Sequence record: NC_019407.1
Strand: one strand, 5' to 3'
Length of the DNA stretch: 64,000 nucleotides
Below, piece after piece: positions 59 through 62,143 of this stretch (position 1 is its first letter; the number at the start of each line of letters is the position of its first letter). Made by a program: the position numbers and the translations under genes. The notes beneath the pieces were generated by a model. The model was not told where the DNA came from. It did no database searches and saw only the letters and a program-made list of their open reading frames with translations.

Positions 59-105
59 TCCTGACATTTGCCCTGAAACGCCAGGGCCTGTCAACGCTTG
101 AAATC

Positions 106-135
106 AAAAGGGCCGCCCCAGCGGGACGGCCCTTT
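106..135 (-). terminator. Intrinsic terminator
   Basis: Minus strand AAAGGGCCGTCCC-GCT-GGGGCGGCCC followed by TTTTGATTT. Confidence 0.8.
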
Positions 136-356
136 CTCGATCTTGTCGAACTTCGCCGATCCGAAACCGGGGCTTCCCGGCGACCGCCTCGGAGTTCGAC
201 CTTGTAGCGCCTTTAACGCTTGCCCCGCGTCGCGGCTTGGGAGCACCGAGCCTTGACGCTGATCTAGTGGGCGGCAGGTGATCGCGGCGGTCATTGCCTC
301 CTTCAAGGGCGAGGCCCTCTCATGCCCGCGCAGCTTAGGCGGCGGCGCGGGTCACG

Positions 357-740: not shown

Positions 741-933
741 GCAGCGAGGGGATGTCGCCGTCCGCCATCTGGTAGAGGCGGACGAACTCGTCGTAGTCGT
801 ACTCGTTGATGAGGTCCCGCATCGCCTGCGGGAGCTTGTCGATGGTCTTGAAGAGCCGGCGCCGATAGCGCTGGGCCTCCATGCGCCGGCGGATGGCGGC
901 GTGGCGCGTCTTGGCCGCCCGAACGCGCCGCAT
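670..933 (-). CDS. Hypothetical protein, 87 aa (MRRVRAAKT...)
   Basis: ATG overlaps the TGA of the upstream gene at 933. Confidence 0.7.
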   Translation of the reverse strand: MRRVRAAKTRHAAIRRRMEAQRYRRRLFKTIDKLPQAMRDLINEYDYDEFVRLYQMADGDIPSLRALLERNRVLKQQALLVDQDPLP

Positions 934-7632: not shown

Positions 7633-8231
7633 GCGGTCTCCTGCTGGAGGTTAGCCGGCGCCGGGATGGCGTCGGAAAGGGCTTGCTCGACCAGGACCAG
7701 GATGTCCATGACGAGCTTGGGATTGAGGTCGGGCTCGGTGAGCGCGGCGGCCAGGGCGTTGATCCGGAACCACGTCGGGTCGGCGTGCGGGATCAGATTG
7801 AGATTGTGCAGGTGCAGCAGCGTCGAGCCGTGGGAGGCGGTCCGCTCCGAAAGCTCGCGCAGCACGCGGGCGCCGGCGAGTTGGTCGGCCAGGACCTTGA
7901 TCACGCTGCCCGAGGGAGCCAGGAGCAGGCGCATCCAGTCGCCGTTCGGATCGTCGGCTTGGCGCAGGTCCGGATGGTCCAGCGTCTTGCCCCAGATCAC
8001 CTCGTGCGCCTTGGCGGCCAGCGAGCGGCGGCGGCGGGCGAGGTCTTCGGCGTCCTTGGCGGCGCGCAGGCTGGAAAGCGTCGTGGCGATCAACACCGAG
8101 GGAAAGAGCGCGACGACGAAGAACGCGGCGCGCTCAAGCGGCGAGGCGTGCGAAGCCACGATATTCATGACCGTGCCGATCAGCACCGTCGGATAGATCA
8201 AGCCGCCGTGGCGCTGGATGAACGAGATCAT
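7629..8231 (-). CDS. Membrane protein, 200 aa
   Basis: Two N-terminal hydrophobic segments; first gene after the promoter at 8287. Confidence 0.75.
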   Translation of the reverse strand: MISFIQRHGGLIYPTVLIGTVMNIVASHASPLERAAFFVVALFPSVLIATTLSSLRAAKDAEDLARRRRSLAAKAHEVIWGKTLDHPDLRQADDPNGDWMRLLLAPSGSVIKVLADQLAGARVLRELSERTASHGSTLLHLHNLNLIPHADPTWFRINALAAALTEPDLNPKLVMDILVLVEQALSDAIPAPANLQQETA

Positions 8232-8306
8232 GAAAAGGGCCTCCGGCGTTGTCGTCGGAGGCCCTTCTAGCGAGTCGGTGTCAGGCTGTCAACACATGTC
8301 AGCCAG
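8229..8306 (-). promoter_or_regulatory. Conserved promoter plus terminator-like leader hairpin
   Basis: CTGGC-N6-GTGTTGACA-N17-TAGAAG-GGCCTCCG-ACGACAACGC-CGGAGGCCC-TTTTC-ATG. Confidence 0.88.
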
Positions 8307-12894: not shown

Positions 12895-12933
12895 AAAACG
12901 AAAAACGCCGGCGAGGATGGCTCGCCGGCGTTT
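12895..12933 (-). terminator. Intrinsic terminator after SPFH
   Basis: Perfect 13-bp stem AAACGCCGGCGAG/CTCGCCGGCGTTT with TTTTCGTTTT on the minus strand. Confidence 0.88.
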
Positions 12934-15162: not shown

Positions 15163-15230
15163 GTCTCCTTCGTTGTCGTCGGGCGTGACTTCTAGTTGGG
15201 TTCCTGGAGGCTGTCAACACTTTCGCTCAC
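15163..15230 (-). promoter_or_regulatory. Conserved promoter
   Basis: GTGTTGACA-N17-TAGAAG-N9-ACGACAACGAAGGAG. Confidence 0.85.
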
Positions 15231-17210: not shown

Positions 17211-17277
17211 GCTCCTCTCGCTGTCGTGAGGGAGCTTGTACGGGCTCACGCCGATGCTGTCAACACTCTAACGCCAA
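17211..17277 (-). promoter_or_regulatory. Conserved promoter with an SD-occluding hairpin
   Basis: TTGGC-N6-GTGTTGACA-N17-TACAAG; GCTCCCTC-ACGACAGC-GAGAGGAGC. Confidence 0.85.
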
Positions 17278-17288
17278 CAAAAGAATCG

Positions 17289-21947: not shown

Positions 21948-22278
21948 GGGCCTTCGCCTTTCTCGGGCGGTTCTCGTCCCACCAGACATGCCACTCGGCC
22001 TTGGTCATCCACGGCTGCTTGCGGCGGTCGTTATAGACCCCGAGGCCCACGGCCGTGACCTGATAGCGCTTGGAGCCGCGCGTCATGAAGGGCAGGCGCT
22101 GCTCGGAGATCACGTAGCCGCGCTTCTCCAACTTGGCCAGCGTCGCCGAGTGGTGCGAGCCATTCGAGCCGCCGACTTCCATCGGCGTATGCCAGCGGAT
22201 CGGCTCATCGCGGAAGGTGGGGATGAGACAGCCCAGGACCTCCCAGTCGCGATCGGTGAGGGGACGCAGACGGCTCAT
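21940..22278 (-). CDS. Winged-helix-like small protein
   Basis: ATLAKLEKRGYV...YQVTAVG. Confidence 0.65.
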   Translation of the reverse strand: MSRLRPLTDRDWEVLGCLIPTFRDEPIRWHTPMEVGGSNGSHHSATLAKLEKRGYVISEQRLPFMTRGSKRYQVTAVGLGVYNDRRKQPWMTKAEWHVWWDENRPRKAKAHG

Positions 22279-22448
22279 CGCAGTAATTCTCCGTCGGCGA
22301 TCCGGATGTCGCTCAGGGGATAGTCCTGGAAGAAGGCGCGCAGCCGCTGGCGCAGCATCCCCTCGACAGCCTCGGCATTGTTCAAGGTCTCGAAGAGGTC
22401 CTCGAACATCTGGCGCTCATTGGCGCGTAAGGGTCGGGTCTTCGGCAC
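22275..22448 (-). CDS. Small protein, 57 aa (MPKTRPLRANERQMFEDLF...)
   Basis: AAGGAGG SD before GTG, directly after the promoter at 22499; stop overlaps the next start; not in the ORF track. Confidence 0.75.
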   Translation of the reverse strand: MPKTRPLRANERQMFEDLFETLNNAEAVEGMLRQRLRAFFQDYPLSDIRIADGELLR

Positions 22449-24346: not shown

Positions 24347-24413
24347 GACCTCCTCGTTGTCGTCGAGGGGGTTCTAGCCGGCGACCGCGACCTTGTCAAC
24401 ACTCTCGCGCCAG
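24347..24413 (-). promoter_or_regulatory. Conserved promoter for ardC, with SD hairpin
   Basis: CTGGC-GCGAGA-GTGTTGACA-N17-TAGAAC-CCCCTCG-ACGACAA-CGAGGAGG. Confidence 0.88.
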
Positions 24414-25539: not shown

Positions 25540-25793
25540 GACTTGAGGCTCTGGCAGGCGAACGTGATCACGTCGCCGAGGGTGTTGAAATCCTCGGGGA
25601 ACTGGACCGGCTCAGGGACGGCGAAGTCCTCCTCCAGGCACATCATCAACTCGATGATGTCCAGGCTGTCGAGGCCCAGATCATCTTCCAGCCGCAGGCC
25701 CTCGTCCATGTCGTCGAGGGTGTACGACCGGTCGGTGATCGCATGGGCGTAGTCGAAGGTCGCCGCCTTGATCTCGTCGCGCGTGAAGGTCAC
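25536..25793 (-). CDS. acpP: Acyl carrier protein (phosphopantetheine-binding)
   Basis: LEDDLGLDSLDIIELMMCLEEDF...FNTLGDVI; acidic, 85 aa. Confidence 0.85.
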   Translation of the reverse strand: MTFTRDEIKAATFDYAHAITDRSYTLDDMDEGLRLEDDLGLDSLDIIELMMCLEEDFAVPEPVQFPEDFNTLGDVITFACQSLKS

Positions 25794-26524
25794 GGCTCTC
25801 CCCCTGGTGTCGTTTCGGCGCTTCTAGCCCTCCCAAGCAGAGCCGTCAACACATCAGCGCCACGCCAGACCCAGGATAGGCTCAGAACGAGGTCGCGGTC
25901 CTCATAGGCGGCGCTGCGCCCGGTGATCACCTTGATCGCCGAGAGCGGGCCAAACCGCCAGAAGACGACCGTGCGCGAGTCGTTACGGCCCGGCAGATGC
26001 TCCAGCAGCACGCGACGCTTGATCGCCAAATGCCGCTGCTCCCTGTGGAGGACGAGCGCGATCTTGCGCGTCGGGTCAGACCCGAACCACCGGCGCCAGT
26101 AGCCCGGATTGTCGATGTTCTCGAACAGCCGGCCGATCCGCTTGCTGACGGGGCGAAGCCCAGGCTCGCGCCGGCGCACGCTCAGCGGCGGAAAGGTGCA
26201 AGGCGGCCACTCCGGAAGCAGGCGCAGGCGCAGCCTCCGGAATTCCCACGCCGGCATGGCGTTGTCCTTGGTGTTGTTGCACGCCACGCAGGCCGCCGCC
26301 AGATTGCTCTCGTGGTTCGATCCGCCCTCGGCCCTAGCCTCCAGGTGCTCGATCGTCACCTCGTCGGGCTCCAGCTTGCCGCCGCCCCGGCCGATCCGCC
26401 GGCGATAGGCCATCTGCCCCGTGCAATAGGTGCAGAGGCCACCCGCCTCCAGGAAGAGGCGGTGGCGGCGGTTCGGAGCGGCGGGCGGTAGCGGGTCCTG
26501 GACCAGCACCTCAGATGAGGACAT
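25790..26524 (-). CDS. HNH endonuclease (Zn-binding McrA/HNH_5 type)
   Basis: CTYC...TIEHL.AR.EGGSN..SNLAAAC.ACN..K. Confidence 0.82.
   Translation of the reverse strand: MSSSEVLVQDPLPPAAPNRRHRLFLEAGGLCTYCTGQMAYRRRIGRGGGKLEPDEVTIEHLEARAEGGSNHESNLAAACVACNNTKDNAMPAWEFRRLRLRLLPEWPPCTFPPLSVRRREPGLRPVSKRIGRLFENIDNPGYWRRWFGSDPTRKIALVLHREQRHLAIKRRVLLEHLPGRNDSRTVVFWRFGPLSAIKVITGRSAAYEDRDLVLSLSWVWRGADVLTALLGRARSAETTPGGEP
25796..25863 (-). promoter_or_regulatory. Conserved promoter for ACP, inside the HNH gene 3' end
   Basis: TGGC-N6-GTGTTGACG-N17-TAGAAG-N7-ACGACAC-CAGGGGAG. Confidence 0.78.
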
Positions 26525-29011: not shown

Positions 29012-29080
29012 GTTCCTTCCGTTGTCGTCACCCGCGACACTAGATGGTCGCGGGTGCGCGTGTCAACACTTCACGTCAGA
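29012..29080 (-). promoter_or_regulatory. Conserved promoter whose -10 sits in the loop of a perfect 10-bp inverted repeat
   Basis: GTGTTGACA-N18-TAGTGT; CACCCGCGAC/GTCGCGGGTG at 29029-29056; ACGACAACGGAAGGA. Confidence 0.82.
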
Positions 29081-30227: not shown

Positions 30228-30520
30228 CAGTCGACCTTCGGTTCGCGCTTGAAGCGGCCGTTCTCGTCATAGCGGTCCGGGTTGGCGCCGGGGGCGTGGA
30301 AGCCCGCCATCGAGCCGATCTCCATGGCCGCGCGCTGCGCCGGCGTGACGCCCATGCGCTGGTTCATGGCGGTGACGGCGGCCTCGCCCTGGACCCCGTA
30401 GTCGGTCGCGTAGTAGCCGGTCTCATCCTTCTTCAGGATGACCGTCTCGCCCGTCTCGATGTTGATCGAGTAGCAGAGGTCGGGCAGGGCCGCGAGATTG
30501 ATCTGGCGTTGGGTCAGCAT
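30227..30520 (-). CDS. Small protein resembling a domain seen in conjugative-element proteins
   Basis: LPDLCYS...TGE.VILK.DETGYY...MNQRMGVT.AQ..AMEIGSM.GF..PGA.P..YDENG. Confidence 0.75.
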   Translation of the reverse strand: MLTQRQINLAALPDLCYSINIETGETVILKKDETGYYATDYGVQGEAAVTAMNQRMGVTPAQRAAMEIGSMAGFHAPGANPDRYDENGRFKREPKVD

Positions 30521-32852: not shown

Positions 32853-33108
32853 AGGTGATCCTGTACGGGAGCCCGCCGACGCAGATTTTCCCGCGTCGGC
32901 CGTCGGCGGTGGTGAAGCGGAAGCCCTGGCGGTTCTTGGTGCCGGCGCAGGACCACCATGCGCGGTGGAAGCTGACGACCTCGACGCCGGTGTCGCGCTC
33001 GACCAGATGTCGAGCGTGACGCCCCTCCCAGGTGTAGGCCCAGACCCCGATGGCGAAGAAGACCAGAGTCAGGGAGCCATAGATGGCCCCTTTGACATAG
33101 TCCCCCAT
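32839..33108 (-). CDS. Small membrane-anchored protein
   Basis: N-terminal TM segment. Confidence 0.65.
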   Translation of the reverse strand: MGDYVKGAIYGSLTLVFFAIGVWAYTWEGRHARHLVERDTGVEVVSFHRAWWSCAGTKNRQGFRFTTADGRRGKICVGGLPYRITYGRD

Positions 33109-33485
33109 CAGGCCGCCACGAGCCCGGTGATCACGTCGGTGACGATGCGGCGCTTCTCGGCCGGCATGCCCGCCAGCGCCAGGATCGTCTTGGCGCCGAT
33201 CTCGGCGACGGCGGTCTCGACGTCGGCCCGGCCGTCGGTCAGGAACGCCGGATCGTCGACCGGCGGATAGAAGTGCCCGATGTCCTTCTTCAGGAACTGA
33301 GCCGCCTCGTAGAGCTTCGAGGACGAGATGCGGTTATGCCCGCGCTCGTATTTCTGGACCTGCTGGAAGGTCACGCCGATCGCCTCGGCGAGTTGGCCTT
33401 GCGAGAAGCCGGCCGTCTTGCGGGTGTCGCGCAGCTTGCGCCCCACATAGACGTCGACGGGGTGCGGGGTCTTGTCGTCAGCCAT
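33108..33485 (-). CDS. XRE-family HTH transcription factor (alphaproteobacterial StaR/Rtr-like)
   Basis: HPVDVYVGRKLR..R...GFSQ.QLAEAIGVTFQQVQKYERG.NRISSSKLY; AGGAGG SD. Confidence 0.88.
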   Translation of the reverse strand: MADDKTPHPVDVYVGRKLRDTRKTAGFSQGQLAEAIGVTFQQVQKYERGHNRISSSKLYEAAQFLKKDIGHFYPPVDDPAFLTDGRADVETAVAEIGAKTILALAGMPAEKRRIVTDVITGLVAA

Positions 33486-34824: not shown

Positions 34825-34856
34825 AAAAGAAAACCGCCGCCCCGAAGGACGGCGGT
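34825..34856 (-). terminator. Intrinsic terminator with a cUUCGg loop
   Basis: ACCGCCGTCC-TTCG-GGGCGGCGGT-TTTCTTTT. Confidence 0.88.
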
Positions 34857-34882
34857 CATGACAGAGCATGTCAGGAGGGACG

Positions 34883-38225: not shown

Positions 38226-38405
38226 CTACTCCTTGATCTCGACGCTCTTGGGCGGATTGGGATGAGGAACGAAGACCAGGGCCACGTCCTGACCGCCGGT
38301 ATAGCGCGTGCGCCGACTGTAGAGCCAGCCGCCTTCCACCGCCAACCGCTCGGTCACCTGACCATCGGCTTCGTCGATCTTTTCCCACTTGGACTTCTTA
38401 GCCAT
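38226..38405 (-). CDS. Small protein, 59 aa (MAKKSKWEKIDEADGQVTERLAVEGGWLYS...FVPHP)
   Basis: GAGGGG SD; just below the ORF-track cutoff; apparent paralog of 45624-45920. Confidence 0.72.
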   Translation of the reverse strand: MAKKSKWEKIDEADGQVTERLAVEGGWLYSRRTRYTGGQDVALVFVPHPNPPKSVEIKE

Positions 38406-38426
38406 CTTCCCCTCGAATTTGGCGGC

Positions 38427-38455
38427 ACCCTAGAGGAGCGTTCGAGTGTTGACAA
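38427..38455 (-). promoter_or_regulatory. Leftward promoter of the divergence (drives 38226-38405 and gcrA)
   Basis: TTGTCA-N17-TAGGGT on the minus strand, made from the first copy of the TTCGAGTGTTGACAAG repeat. Confidence 0.55.
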
Positions 38456-38467
38456 GCACCAATGTCG

Positions 38468-38534
38468 CTGGCTTTCGAGTGTTGACAAGTCCGGTGCTCG
38501 TCTATAGGGGAGACCGGGACGACAACGAAAGGAG
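38468..38534 (+). promoter_or_regulatory. First rightward conserved promoter
   Basis: CTGGC-N6-GTGTTGACA-N17-TAGGGG-N8-ACGACAACGAAAGGAG. Confidence 0.88.
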
Positions 38535-38540
38535 CCTGCC

Positions 38541-38849
38541 ATGCGCTATGTGCTCGACTATGCCGACGACCGGGACAAGCCGGTCTACACCGATTTCCAG
38601 GCCGGCGACCGCAAGGCGGCCATCGCCAAGGCCAAGCGCCTGCTCGCCAAGGCGATCAAGACCGTCGATTTCTCGCTCCACGGGGCCTATATCTTCGTCG
38701 ATCCGACGGGCGTCGCCCGCGACGTCGACGACATGATCCCGTTCGGGATGCTGAGCACGATGGCCTACGCCAGCATCATCACCCCGTCGATGATCTCGTT
38801 CGACGACCGCGACGCCAAGGCGGCGATCGCCGCGAGGCTCGCCCAATGA
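38541..38849 (+). CDS. Hypothetical protein, 102 aa
   Basis: AAAGGAG SD after the promoter. Confidence 0.8.
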   Translation: MRYVLDYADDRDKPVYTDFQAGDRKAAIAKAKRLLAKAIKTVDFSLHGAYIFVDPTGVARDVDDMIPFGMLSTMAYASIITPSMISFDDRDAKAAIAARLAQ

Positions 38850-40463: not shown

Positions 40464-40718
40464 ATGCTGACCAAGGACGAGATCACCTTCGCGGGCCTGA
40501 TCAAGGCCATGGAGGACGCCCGCCGCACCGCCAAGGCGGCGGGCGATCTCGTCAGCACGGCCGAGATCGACCGCTGGTTCAAGGAACACGCGCCGATCAT
40601 CCGGGAGGTCCGCGACAAGGCCGAGGCCGACGAATTCGACGCTGGCGCGAGAGTGTTGACAACCTCTGAGGAAGGGGCTAAAGACACCCTCGACGACAGC
40701 GAAAGGAGCCTGCCTTGA
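40464..40718 (+). CDS. Hypothetical protein, 84 aa
   Basis: Its 3' end contains the next promoter. Confidence 0.65.
   Translation: MLTKDEITFAGLIKAMEDARRTAKAAGDLVSTAEIDRWFKEHAPIIREVRDKAEADEFDAGARVLTTSEEGAKDTLDDSERSLP
40642..40707 (+). promoter_or_regulatory. Conserved promoter
   Basis: CTGGC-GCGAGA-GTGTTGACA-N17-TAAAGA-N8-ACGACAGCGAAAGGAG. Confidence 0.85.
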
Positions 40719-43793: not shown

Positions 43794-43866
43794 CTGGCGC
43801 GAAAGTGTTGACAAGGTTCTGGGAACTCCTCTATACCCACGCTCGACGACAACGAGAGGAGTTCCC
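43794..43866 (+). promoter_or_regulatory. Conserved promoter; the spacer pairs perfectly (11 bp) with the SD
   Basis: CTGGC-N6-GTGTTGACA-N18-TATACC-N8-ACGACAA; GGGAACTCCTC (43821-43831) / GAGGAGTTCCC (43856-43866). Confidence 0.88.
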
Positions 43867-45627
43867 ATGGCCGAGACCATGTCCCTGAGTTTCCGGATCG
43901 AAGGCGCCGCCCTGGTGGAACGGGCGCGCGATCGCGTCATCGAAGGTAACTGGGAGCACGGCCTGCGCATCCTGGTCGAGGGCCTGCACGGCATGTCCTA
44001 CGAACTCGCGATCGACATCCTGCTCGGCAAGCACACCCTGGGCGGCTGGTCCTCGGACCCCGAGGGCGTCTATCTCACCGACCAGGACCCGGAGGACGAG
44101 ACTTTCAAGCGCTACAAGAAAACCCTCGACTACCAGTTCGCCGGCGTCTTCAAGCTGGACGACGGCCGGATCATGCGCCCCTACGCGGTGGTCGACAGCT
44201 TCTCCAAGATCGACTTCGACTCTAGGGTCCGCTTCCTGCGGCTGGCCCAGGGCTCGGACCCGGTGTTCTCGCGCCCCAAGCGCTATCACGACCCCCGCGC
44301 CGAGATCAACGGCGAGGAGATCGACTGGGCCTATCGCGCCCTGCACTACGCCGACGAGCCGACCCAGGACATCGTCCGTCTGGTCCGCATGGAGGGCTTC
44401 CACCCCACGATCCGGGCGGCGGTCCTGTTCAAGGAAGTCCGCGACTACCCCAAGCTCCTGCTCCCGAAGGTCGAGACCGACGCCCAGAAGGCCGTCGACG
44501 TGGCGATCAAGGCCCAGCGTGGTCTCTCCAAGCGCGGGCACGTCTACGAGTATGGCGCTGGTCAGGACTTCGACAAGGAGCACTACAAGACCACCATGGG
44601 GATCGATCAGGTCCCCACCGCCTGGACCGTGCGCAATCCGAAGTACGTCGATCCCGACGCCAAGTTCGTGAAGGACACCCTGGCCGAGATCGACGGCGAC
44701 AAGCGCCCGGCGCCGGCCGGTGATTACGCCGGCGCCATGAACCGGATGATCAAGGACGAGATGGACGGCGGCATGGACATCAGCGCGGCCGTCGCCATGA
44801 CCCAGGCCAAGATGGCGCTGCTGGGCGGCATGGCCGAGGACCCCGAGCAGCGCCTGCGGGCGATCAACGACGCCTACGCCGCCAAGTACGAGAAGGCCGA
44901 GGGCCGCAGCGTCGAGGAGTACCGCAAGGCCATCATCGCCCAGGCCGGCGATGATTTCTTCGATCTCGCGTACACGGATGTGAACGGCAAGGACGTCGTC
45001 CTGAAGGTCCCGACCGCGCCGTTCGAGCAGTGGGCGCTCTGGCGCACGGCCGGCTCCCACCTCGCCAAGCCCTGGAAGCGGGTGACCTACACCGGCTTCA
45101 AGACGTTCGGCGATGACCCCTATCACACCGACTGGGTGCTGGGCGCCGGGCTCAATCCCGAGGATTGGCCGATCATCGAGGCCGACAACCCGCCGCTCCA
45201 CAAGGCCGCCTGGGACAAGCGCTTCCGGCTGGCCGAGGAGAAGCTGGGCGGCAACATGCGCGTCCTGCTCGGCAAGGGCTTCGTGACCGGCAAGATCGTG
45301 ATGCTCAAGCCGGGCGAGGCCCTGTCACCGGGCGAGATCGGTGTGATCCGCAACGCCGGCCCCGACTACGTTCAGGCCGCCCAGAGCGCGATCGAGCACA
45401 ACACCGCCTTGATCTGCGAGAACGGCGGCAGCGTCGCCCACCTCGTGGTCGAGTACCTGGACAAGCCCCTGCGCCTGACCCGGATCGAGAACGCGCGCAA
45501 GATTTTCAAGGACGGCATGACCGTCTACCTCGACTTTGACAAGTCGACGCGAGAGATCGCCAAGGGCGGCCTGGGGCCGAGCCCTGCCGATCTTGGCCTC
45601 GACACGGAATGGGAGATTTTCGAATGA
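43867..45627 (+). CDS. 586-aa protein with a C-terminal PEP-utilising-enzyme mobile (phospho-His swivel) domain
   Basis: GEIGVIRNAGPDY...ALICENGGSVAHL.......ENARKIFKDGMTVYLD matches the GGxxSH..I...G..V.VD pattern. Confidence 0.72.
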   Translation: MAETMSLSFRIEGAALVERARDRVIEGNWEHGLRILVEGLHGMSYELAIDILLGKHTLGGWSSDPEGVYLTDQDPEDETFKRYKKTLDYQFAGVFKLDDGRIMRPYAVVDSFSKIDFDSRVRFLRLAQGSDPVFSRPKRYHDPRAEINGEEIDWAYRALHYADEPTQDIVRLVRMEGFHPTIRAAVLFKEVRDYPKLLLPKVETDAQKAVDVAIKAQRGLSKRGHVYEYGAGQDFDKEHYKTTMGIDQVPTAWTVRNPKYVDPDAKFVKDTLAEIDGDKRPAPAGDYAGAMNRMIKDEMDGGMDISAAVAMTQAKMALLGGMAEDPEQRLRAINDAYAAKYEKAEGRSVEEYRKAIIAQAGDDFFDLAYTDVNGKDVVLKVPTAPFEQWALWRTAGSHLAKPWKRVTYTGFKTFGDDPYHTDWVLGAGLNPEDWPIIEADNPPLHKAAWDKRFRLAEEKLGGNMRVLLGKGFVTGKIVMLKPGEALSPGEIGVIRNAGPDYVQAAQSAIEHNTALICENGGSVAHLVVEYLDKPLRLTRIENARKIFKDGMTVYLDFDKSTREIAKGGLGPSPADLGLDTEWEIFE

Positions 45628-47660: not shown

Positions 47661-47663
47661 GCG

Positions 47664-47714
47664 TTGACAACACTCTCGCGCCAACATAGAACCGCCCTCG
47701 ACGACAACGAGGAG
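47664..47714 (+). promoter_or_regulatory. Promoter with the upstream box inverted in the spacer
   Basis: TTGACA-ACACTCTCGCGCCAACA-TAGAAC-N8-ACGACAACGAGGAGG. Confidence 0.85.
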
Positions 47715-47720
47715 GCTTCG

Positions 47721-48104
47721 ATGAAACTCGCGACCCAAGACCGCACCGATCCGCGCCTGAACGCGCGCTACCGTCTCGCCAAGGCGGTGTTCTATTACGG
47801 CGGCCCGCACGAGTACCCGATCCACCTGAACGACTGGTGGAACGAGGTGACGCCGGCCGACGTCGAGGACCGCATCTCCGAACTCTGCCGCGAACTGTCC
47901 AAGCTGTCGGGCCAGACCCTGGCGCCGGCGACCTTCTACGAGCGGATGAAGCTGGGCTTCGTCGACCTCCCGGAAGTGAAGGACGAGGACTTCGCCGCCC
48001 TGTCGGAGACGACCCGCAACAACCTGCTCGCCATGCAGGACCGCTTCTCGGTCCACGGGAGCGGCTTCATGCTCTACTGGAACATCGTCAAAGAGGAGGC
48101 CTGA
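47721..48104 (+). CDS. Hypothetical protein, 127 aa (MKLATQD...)
   Basis: GAGGAGG SD after the promoter. Confidence 0.8.
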   Translation: MKLATQDRTDPRLNARYRLAKAVFYYGGPHEYPIHLNDWWNEVTPADVEDRISELCRELSKLSGQTLAPATFYERMKLGFVDLPEVKDEDFAALSETTRNNLLAMQDRFSVHGSGFMLYWNIVKEEA

Positions 48105-49165: not shown

Positions 49166-49230
49166 CTGGCGTTCTTGTGTTGACAAGGCCGGCGCCGCTG
49201 GCCTAGAACGTCGTGGACGACAACAGGAGG
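49166..49230 (+). promoter_or_regulatory. Conserved promoter
   Basis: CTGGC-N6-GTGTTGACA-N18-TAGAAC-N7-ACGACAACAGGAGG. Confidence 0.85.
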
Positions 49231-56869: not shown

Positions 56870-56875
56870 ATTTTG

Positions 56876-56942
56876 TTGGCGTTAGAACGTTGACAGCCTC
56901 GGCGTGATGTCATAAAAGCCTCCTCGACGACAACGAGGAGGC
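56876..56942 (+). promoter_or_regulatory. Conserved promoter with a perfect 9-bp SD-occluding hairpin
   Basis: TTGGC-N6-ACGTTGACA-N17-TAAAAG; GCCTCCTCG-ACGACAA-CGAGGAGGC. Confidence 0.88.
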
Positions 56943-56946
56943 CCAC

Positions 56947-57366
56947 ATGGCTTACGCAATTCCGGACCTGAGCACGTTCACGTTCCACGACCCCAAGGTC
57001 GAACGGTTCGCCAAGGCGATGATCTCGACGATCGAGACTGCTCAGACCATCCTCACGGCCTTCGCCAACGATCTCGCCGACAATCCTCTTCAGGCGTTCG
57101 AGCATAGCTACGGCGCCAAGATGGCCGCCGCCCACAGGGACGTCGCCAAGGGGCTGCTCAACGAGGTTCTCGACGCGCTGCTGCACGGTCAGGACAAGAC
57201 CTGGGCCTACATCGGCCAGGACCTGCGCGAGCGGCTGATGTATCGCGTGATCTACGCGGCCTCGAACCCGCCGCGCTCGACCAACGTCGAAGGCAACGAC
57301 ATGGCCCGCTTCGTCCTGCGCGCCGAGGCCGACATGCTCGACCGCATGACCAAGAGCCGCTTCTGA
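56947..57366 (+). CDS. Hypothetical helical protein, 139 aa
   Basis: First gene after the promoter. Confidence 0.8.
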   Translation: MAYAIPDLSTFTFHDPKVERFAKAMISTIETAQTILTAFANDLADNPLQAFEHSYGAKMAAAHRDVAKGLLNEVLDALLHGQDKTWAYIGQDLRERLMYRVIYAASNPPRSTNVEGNDMARFVLRAEADMLDRMTKSRF

Positions 57367-58278: not shown

Positions 58279-58344
58279 TTGGCGTTCAAGTGTTGCCAAG
58301 CCTCTCGGCTTGCGCTACACCCATCGTCGACGACAACGAGGAGG
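58279..58344 (+). promoter_or_regulatory. Conserved promoter (TTGCCA variant)
   Basis: TTGGC-N6-GTGTTGCCA-N17-TACACC-N8-ACGACAACGAGGAGG. Confidence 0.82.
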
Positions 58345-58350
58345 CCCCCC

Positions 58351-62053: not shown

Positions 62054-62079
62054 GCCTCCGGGCAGGCTGACATAGGCGC

Positions 62080-62143
62080 TTGACAACACTCTCGCGCCAA
62101 CATAGAAGGGCCTCCGACGACAACGCCGGAGGCCCTTTTCATG
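62080..62143 (+). promoter_or_regulatory. Promoter with inverted box in the spacer, plus the 41-nt hairpin cassette
   Basis: TTGACA-ACACTCTCGCGCCAACA-TAGAAGGGCCTCCGACGACAACGCCGGAGGCCCTTTTCATG. Confidence 0.88.

Follow-up and report, generated by a model that had tools for sequence, protein, structure and literature searches.

Caulobacter phage CcrMagneto carries, in its early region, a conserved subset of promoter-leader cassettes in which promoter DNA is complementary to the ribosome-binding site that follows it. We propose, at a probability of roughly 0.6, that the hairpin formed by these two segments gates translation of the first gene of each such unit on read-through RNA. The early region appears to be built of repeated expression cassettes, each with a host sigma-73-type promoter, an unstructured A/C-rich leader, a strong SD and a start codon. 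In the subset, the DNA just 5' of the predicted +1 (the whole -35/-10 spacer, or the discriminator) is complementary to the segment from the SD to the start codon and would act as a 5' arm. RNA made from the cassette's own promoter would lack this arm and leave the ribosome site open; RNA reading through from upstream would contain both arms, which would pair and bury the site, with hairpin energies of -12 to -29 kcal/mol and down to -35 in relatives. The first gene would then be translated mainly from own-promoter transcripts and silenced on read-through RNA. The subset consists of gp245, gp274, gp252, gp166, gp284 and gp184, plus two weak cases. Gating of this predicted, T4-like kind is well supported for the conserved subset, but not as a system-wide rule.

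Promoter-leader cassettes in the early region

The window analysed here, 64,000 nucleotides long, corresponds to bases 124001-188000 of CcrMagneto (NC_019407.1; 100% identity match), a phiCbK-like siphophage (Shapirovirus). According to the annotation, genes occupy the minus strand from 38405 down to 1 and the plus strand between 38541 and 64000, with the point of divergence at 38405-38541. The orthologue of phiCbK tgrL (gp223) lies on the minus-strand arm (33108-33485), and tgrL was found to be early in phiCbK by RNA-seq (PMC10688885). A search with Rfam 15 gave no family match at the gathering threshold anywhere in the window.

All intergenic gaps were compared in sense orientation, and at least 18 promoter-leader cassettes were found. 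Eighteen, 8 on the plus strand and 10 on the minus strand, were aligned from the -35 through the start codon. Their order is a (T)GGC-N-GTG element, TTGACA, a Caulobacter-type -10 (often exactly GCTAGAAC or GCTAGAAG), a discriminator of 6-9 nt that in many cases ends in CTC, the motif GACGACAAC, a strong SD and a start codon, the last located 19-25 nt after the beginning of GACGACAAC. TTGACA matches the -35 element (TTGaCgS) and the cassette -10 resembles the -10 element (GCtANAWC) of the Caulobacter RpoD consensus (PMC8144410), and all cassettes share one host sigma-73-type promoter consensus, classes being judged from sequence only. The cassettes all escaped a simple E. coli-type promoter scan, since the final base of a Caulobacter -10 box is C or G, not T.

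Spacing within the cassettes allowed the transcript start to be predicted. In the 18 cassettes the GACGACAAC G follows the T of TTGACA at a distance of 35-38 nt (mode 36), and global 5' RACE in the host mapped the first base of the RpoD motif to between -34 and -37 in 93% of 1,666 promoters (PMC4287350). From this host rule and the spacing we infer that the cassette +1 falls within -4 to +2 of the GACGACAAC G. Therefore the cassette's own transcript should be without the 5' arm, and GACGACAAC is most likely, and most simply, the beginning of a standard, unstructured A/C-rich leader. The preliminary description of this DNA had placed the 5' arm wholly or partly upstream of the start, which fits the geometry of every cassette, whether the arm is in the spacer or in the discriminator. 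Read-through RNA is plausible given the lack of terminators, with promoters standing in tandem on each strand.

In a pattern scan of IMG/VR the cassette was matched only in the phages Karma, Rogue and BL10; six metagenome matches to the pattern were AT-rich chance matches and were discarded. The cassettes are not described in the phiCbK genome paper nor elsewhere in the literature searched, in which no paper contained both GACGACAAC and Caulobacter.

Several further features of the cassettes were observed. A conserved (T)GGCG-N5-GTG element lies directly 5' of TTGACA in most of them (7 matches against 0 expected), and a second subtype carries its reverse complement inside the -35/-10 spacer (TTGACAACACTCTCGCGCCAAC). 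With both orientations occurring, the element may be a protein-binding site that works in either direction, or a divergent -35. A full gp239 cassette (40655-40717, plus strand; TTG start at 40715) sits within coding DNA, at the 3' end of gp238, which shows that promoters of this family can also occur outside the gaps between genes. On the minus strand, the TAG in the -10 box CTAGAA doubles as the upstream stop codon at gp199/gp200 (24374-24376) and gp181/gp182 (15192-15194), so that the gp199 and gp181 promoters are embedded in the end of the preceding gene. For gp195 (22275-22448, minus strand) the annotated ATG is at 22409, and the cassette SD is at the standard distance from a GTG at 22448, which would give a protein of 57 aa versus 44 aa; the annotated start is probably too far downstream. 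Finally, Rogue and BL10 both contain a cassette promoter and GACGACAAC followed by a hairpin (GTCCGAAAT with ATTTCGGAC) in place of SD and gene, which may specify a small non-coding RNA or an attenuator.

Table 1. Features of the CcrMagneto cassettes and related elements. Positions refer to the window, except for the hairpin-only cassette; energies are predicted folding energies.
Feature	Position	Strand	Description	kcal/mol	z
gp245 -35 TTGACA	43808-43813	+	invariant in 10 phages		
gp245 hairpin 5' arm	43820-43832	+	TGGGAACTCCTCT; fills the promoter spacer; last T is the first -10 base		
gp245 -10 TATACC	43832-43837	+	octamer TCTATACC resembles GCtANAWC		
gp245 GACGACAAC	43845-43853	+	+1 predicted at 43842-43845		
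gp245 hairpin 3' arm	43855-43867	+	AGAGGAGTTCCCA; SD GAGGAG, spacer and A of ATG		
gp245 coding sequence	43867-45627	+	586 aa		
gp274 hairpin	56918-56942	+	5' arm GCCTCCTCG in discriminator, loop ACGACAA, 3' arm CGAGGAGGC with SD	-18.2	-5.6
gp252 leader hairpin	47685-47723	+	-10 and discriminator pair with SD through ATG	-12.3	-2.8
41-nt -10-to-ATG unit 5' of gp284	62101-62143	+	GC-rich hairpin from -10 to SD, then TTTTC and ATG	-27.6	-7.5
41-nt unit, second copy, 5' of gp166	8229-8272	-		-27.1	-5.5
gp184 leader hairpin	17211-17235	-	8 bp plus bulge; 5' arm in discriminator	-13.3	-2.6
gp199 (ArdC-like) leader	24347-24372	-	weak hairpin		-1.7
gp204 (acyl carrier protein) leader	25790-25846	-	8-bp pairing of -35-proximal spacer with SD and start		-1.5
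gp278 cassette	58300-58345	+	proposed pairing at chance, not conserved		
gp231 cassette	38482-38543	+	first of the plus-strand arm; no occlusion; no same-strand promoter upstream		
Canonical intrinsic terminator	12903-12933	-	perfect 13-bp GC-rich stem, long U tract		-3.8
Canonical intrinsic terminator	about 34826-34858	-	perfect 11-bp GC-rich stem, long U tract		-3.5
(T)GGCG-N5-GTG element or subtype	47663-47684, 62079-62100	+	compare 24386-24404 (-), 40641-40661 (+), 17258-17278 (-), 56875-56895 (+)		
Hairpin-only cassette	Rogue L004 16573-16660; BL10 L030 about 820-900	+	conserved in both		

Complementary arms upstream of gp245

The cassette of gp245 occupies an 80-nt gap 5' of the gp245 ATG, with the G of GACGACAAC 37 nt from the T of TTGACA. 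An 11-bp perfect pairing had been claimed at 43821-43866. This pairing is real and in fact extends to 13 bp of perfect complementarity, with 22 nt between the two arms (Table 1). Only one other perfect hairpin-type inverted repeat of at least 13 nt was found in the 64 kb, namely the terminator at 12903-12933. RNA spanning 43808-43880 folded at -28.9 kcal/mol (z = -4.79), and none of 200 shuffled sequences was equally stable. The leader starting at 43845 gave z = +1.69 and was less structured than 192 of its 200 shuffles. A comparison of read-through and predicted-+1 leaders had been proposed as a check, and this contrast speaks for gating.

The gp245 protein has no Pfam match. In tblastn searches it showed a weak resemblance (29-31% identity) to Vibrio phage proteins annotated as 'PEP-utilizing enzyme', and homologues were also found in Brevundimonas phage Bajun and Caulobacter phage Seuss. 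In Bajun the homologue and the gene before it overlap, so there is no intergenic space in which a cassette could lie. When Pfam was applied to all eight genes with occluded ribosome sites, the only matches were ArdC/metallopeptidase (gp199) and PP-binding (gp204), with no common theme.

Occlusion of ribosome sites across the cassettes

To compare cassettes we calculated, for 30 C, the opening free energy of the ribosome site (-16 to +3), all folding energies being predictions for isolated RNA, without co-transcriptional folding or ribosomes. Opening energy was used in place of RNAduplex because the latter ignores competing structure; run with just the SD region and the 48 nt upstream, it gave p <= 0.03 relative to shuffles for only 5 of 18 cassettes. 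In the own-transcript form (RNA starting at GACGACAAC) the 18 Magneto cassettes required 7.5 kcal/mol, rising to 13.6 kcal/mol with their own 60 nt of upstream sequence, compared with 10.7 with that of another cassette and 9.6 with random sequence. The effect of the cognate upstream sequence corresponded to z = 6.8 against random sense-strand phage sequence and to p = 0.0002 in a swap permutation. The result was replicated in 18 Rogue cassettes (7.1 own-transcript, 14.1 own upstream, 11.4 other cassette's, 9.2 random; all kcal/mol), with z = 8.4 against random sequence and swap p < 1e-4 (0 of 10,000 permutations). The gain due to long context was 6.25 kcal/mol in cassettes and 0.84 in 119 genes without a cassette (Mann-Whitney p = 1e-5), and the short cassette leaders were more open than those 119 genes (p = 0.001). 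A scan of start positions found the ribosome sites open for any start within the predicted window and, in the case of gp245, for any start downstream of the -10.

Individually, 8 of the 18 Magneto cassettes (43845, 47700, 56926, 62116, 8256, 17228, 24364 and 25814) exceeded at least 95% of natural controls in opening energy. The other 10 showed no occlusion beyond chance by the same comparison, and 7 of 18 were individually significant in CcrRogue. The preliminary description had extended gating to every unit of the region, and these counts do not bear that out.

Ranked by fold, the strong cases are gp245, gp274 and the two 41-nt units, followed by gp252 and gp184 as moderate and by gp199 and the acyl carrier protein gene as weak. 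Most of these pairings had been named in the preliminary description. The perfect 9-bp helix of gp274 (ATG at 56947) was confirmed, and none of 60 natural controls was as occluding; pairing over the SD was likewise recovered in both 41-nt cassettes. At gp184 the 8 bp plus bulge are present and of moderate strength. Opening-energy control comparisons gave 0.05 for gp184 and 0.05 for gp252. The pairing described for gp199 exists but makes a weak example, as does the 8-bp pairing of gp204, which is borderline and lies inside the gp205 coding sequence. For gp278 only the letters of the proposed pairing could be retrieved: it is at chance, being equalled in 0.47 of natural controls, and the Rogue and BL10 orthologues lack it.

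In all significant cases the 3' arm includes the SD. For the six best hairpins, 25-50 nt separate the stop codon of the preceding gene from the 5' arm, too far for a terminating ribosome to reach. At 24364 (gp199) ribosomes that terminate on gp200 would cover the 5' arm, and at 25814 (gp204) both promoter and hairpin are located in the coding sequence of gp205. Since ribosomes would reach or cross the hairpins at 24364 and 25814 and open them, coupling is predicted at these two sites, not gating.

A different arrangement was observed in the gp212 cassette (29030-29060, minus strand), where the spacer has its pairing partner in the discriminator, on the far side of the -10, and not in the SD (ACCCGCGAC with GTCGCGGGT). 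Its Rogue counterpart, at about 30264-30290 (-) of L003, keeps the pairing with different sequences (CCGTGAC with GTCACGG). The read-through ribosome site of Magneto gp212 required 4.2 kcal/mol to open, the lowest value of all, and was more open than with any control upstream sequence; that of the Rogue cassette of this type was no more occluded than controls. Such pairing may serve the reverse purpose and keep the ribosome site accessible.

Conservation in related phages

Among Magneto, Karma, BL10 and Rogue, the gp245, gp252, gp274 and gp166 sites were occluded wherever they were located, and the cassettes at 49216, 58329, 15180, 22469 and 20524 were open in every one of these genomes with an orthologue. 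Covariation in related phages, proposed earlier as a check, was found in the gp245 stem. Ten phages of two genera all keep 10-15 bp (-14.5 to -25.4 kcal/mol), and three pairs show compensatory changes, A-T, A-T and T-A in Magneto being C-G, G-C and C-G in BL10. These changes fall outside the SD core. The arms are GGGA(A)CTCCTCT and AGAGGAGTTCCC in Shapirovirus, and (C)GGGGCCTCCTC and GAGGAGGCCCC(G) in the Poindextervirus clade; the Ccr10 and BL57 stems look like one-mismatch intermediates. Pairs were tabulated anchored on the arms, because MAFFT alignments misplaced a clade-specific indel in the 3' arm. In BL10 all 17 nt of the gp245 promoter spacer are paired (-35.4 kcal/mol, z = -6.5), the partner segment running from the SD to 2 nt past the ATG.

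The gp274 hairpin is kept in BL10 and Rogue. Its outermost pair is G-C in Magneto and C-G in BL10, and the upstream promoter halves are unrelated. The gp252 hairpin is stronger in the Rogue orthologue (long-form opening energy 21.0). The gp204 leader is identical in Karma, and inspection by eye revealed no clear equivalent pairing in Rogue. Rogue provides two further independent examples, one with a spacer arm (L004 19050-19112) and one with a discriminator arm 5' of gp250 that is without the GACGACAAC loop. The latter hairpin was considered as covariation with Magneto gp184 and rejected, the two proteins being unrelated.

The 41-nt unit and intrinsic terminators

The 41-nt unit is identical in several phages and precedes unrelated genes in Rogue and BL10. 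The copy 5' of gp166 is kept in the Karma, BL10 and Rogue orthologues, with a C-to-T change in Karma and Rogue that produces a G-U pair. The hairpin 5' of gp284 occludes the ribosome site and is also terminator-like. Two canonical intrinsic terminators were noticed on the minus-strand arm (Table 1), the only ones seen there, and both close transcription units. On the plus-strand arm a simple scan, which has known false negatives, found no terminator-like sites above shuffle expectation.

A near-perfect 13-nt inverted repeat was also observed at 107-135 (AAAGGGCCGCCCC with GGGACGGCCCTTT, 3-nt loop, A/T flanks), within the 3' end of gp153 (91-294, minus strand) and near gp152. It looks like a bidirectional terminator.

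Alternative explanations

Terminator-like features raise the question of whether the hairpins, or at least that of the 41-nt unit, act instead by stopping incoming polymerase, the cassette's own transcripts starting inside the structure and thus escaping. Insulation would then operate on transcription, alone or along with ribosome-site occlusion. We regard such a self-bypassing terminator as possible but doubtful. Like intrinsic terminators, including the two canonical ones of this phage, the 41-nt units have long GC-rich stems (about -27 kcal/mol) with an A-rich 5' flank (AGAA) and a U-rich 3' flank (TTTTC), and their presence as an identical unit before unrelated genes in several phages is in keeping with this role. 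However, the U tract is shorter (only 4 nt) and the loop larger (10 nt, or 4 if two inner pairs form) than in intrinsic terminators, a ribosome-binding site, 8 nt away from the ATG, makes up the 3' arm, and the 5' arm overlaps the promoter -10 and discriminator. The simple scan leaves the unit unflagged, but says little, as it also misses the canonical terminator at 12903-12933. The gp245, gp274, gp252 and gp184 hairpins are without a U run, so termination does not explain the family. An element for RNA processing or stability, that is, a landmark for RNase III or RNase E or a 3'-end protector of the upstream message in which SD burial is incidental, is unlikely. Stable hairpins at transcription-unit boundaries, with a conserved single-stranded A/C-rich loop that could be cleaved, would suit such an element, but 8-13 bp stems are short for RNase III and there is no reason for a processing signal to be tied to the SD. 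All significant cases have the SD in the 3' arm (gp245 and BL10 also the start codon), and this persists though arm sequences and loop lengths (7, 10 or 22 nt) vary.

The remaining two explanations concern the promoter rather than the RNA. Discriminators might be C/T-rich for promoter reasons and pair incidentally with purine-rich SDs. Many discriminators do end in CTC, and the upstream sequences of non-cognate cassettes occlude slightly more than random ones (10.7 versus 9.6 kcal/mol). Cognate sequences nevertheless beat non-cognate ones in the swap tests of both phages, the gp245 arm is in the spacer and not in the discriminator, and its compensatory changes lie outside the SD core. We consider incidental pairing very improbable, and the swap tests, together with those changes, leave no room for a pure effect of composition. 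The repeats could also be DNA palindromes around the -10 and +1, serving as operators at which a dimeric phage or host regulator shuts the promoters off. They do straddle the core promoter, and several of the region's genes specify HTH proteins, among them gp194, gp223 (the TgrL orthologue) and gp276. Yet arm sequence and spacing vary between cassettes of one genome, which rules out recognition by a single protein; the repeat is missing from half of this promoter family; the SD invariably forms one arm; and changes are complementary between arms, with no constant half-site across cassettes or clades. We attach almost no likelihood to the operator explanation.

Discussion

Read-through hairpin gating of the first gene, our preferred explanation for the conserved subset, has an established precedent. 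As the preliminary description stated, T4 e, soc and 49 have hairpins that hide ribosome sites on long transcripts and are absent from own-promoter transcripts, and the same applies to I-TevI (PMC3014915). The CcrMagneto cassettes resemble these genes in that the SD and/or AUG is predicted to lie in the 3' strand of a helix (gp245, gp274, gp284, gp166, gp252 and gp184), the transcript from the gene's own promoter is predicted to start downstream of the 5' strand, long upstream transcripts are predicted to contain both strands, and the arrangement is conserved among related phages. Folding energies taken together with the T4 precedent suggest an effect on translation. Hairpins also sequester the ribosome sites of the homing-endonuclease genes Aeh1 mobE, T4 segB, I-TevII and I-TevIII (cited in PMC3014915). 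The likeness there is a local hairpin over the SD that limits translation from read-through RNA, as predicted for the cassettes; the difference is that those are mobile endonuclease genes, and these are ordinary early genes.

The cassettes also differ from the T4 device in several respects. T4 uses phage late promoters, whereas the cassettes use host sigma-73 (sigma-70-type) promoters that, judged by sequence, belong to one class and not to different temporal classes, so that, unlike in T4, there is no evident early-to-late switch. The 5' arm belongs to a standardised cassette with at least 18 occurrences in 64 kb, where it takes up the spacer or the discriminator, and only about 40% of Magneto cassettes carry it. 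Gating in the cassettes is predicted here from sequence and computed folds. What is new relative to the known promoter-in-hairpin device of T4 is its occurrence in an unrelated siphophage, with host-type promoters, modular recurrence and compensatory evolution.

As to purpose, our guess is that the hairpins insulate gene dosage from cumulative upstream transcription. We tentatively extend this to a portable 'insulated expression cassette', in which the spacer or discriminator doubles as the 5' arm. Insulation would be mostly translational, with the 41-nt unit also terminating incoming polymerase; the promoter embedded in that unit would bypass the terminator by starting within it. Such an extension is possible, but we would not favour it at present. 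If true, the same unit, moved to positions before unrelated genes, would leave the output of each early gene under the sole control of that gene's own promoter within a terminator-poor tandem array.

If read-through gating of the conserved subset is correct, the early region of the phiCbK-like phages, which is poorly annotated, would gain a first grammar of regulation; these are model phages of Caulobacter. Such gating would define a promoter-leader cassette with a predicted +1 and provide a rule to tell the genes that are uncoupled from upstream transcription. Annotation also gains, for example at the gp195 start. The cassettes would, in addition, supply compact natural parts for Caulobacter, namely insulated promoters and possibly a self-bypassing terminator.
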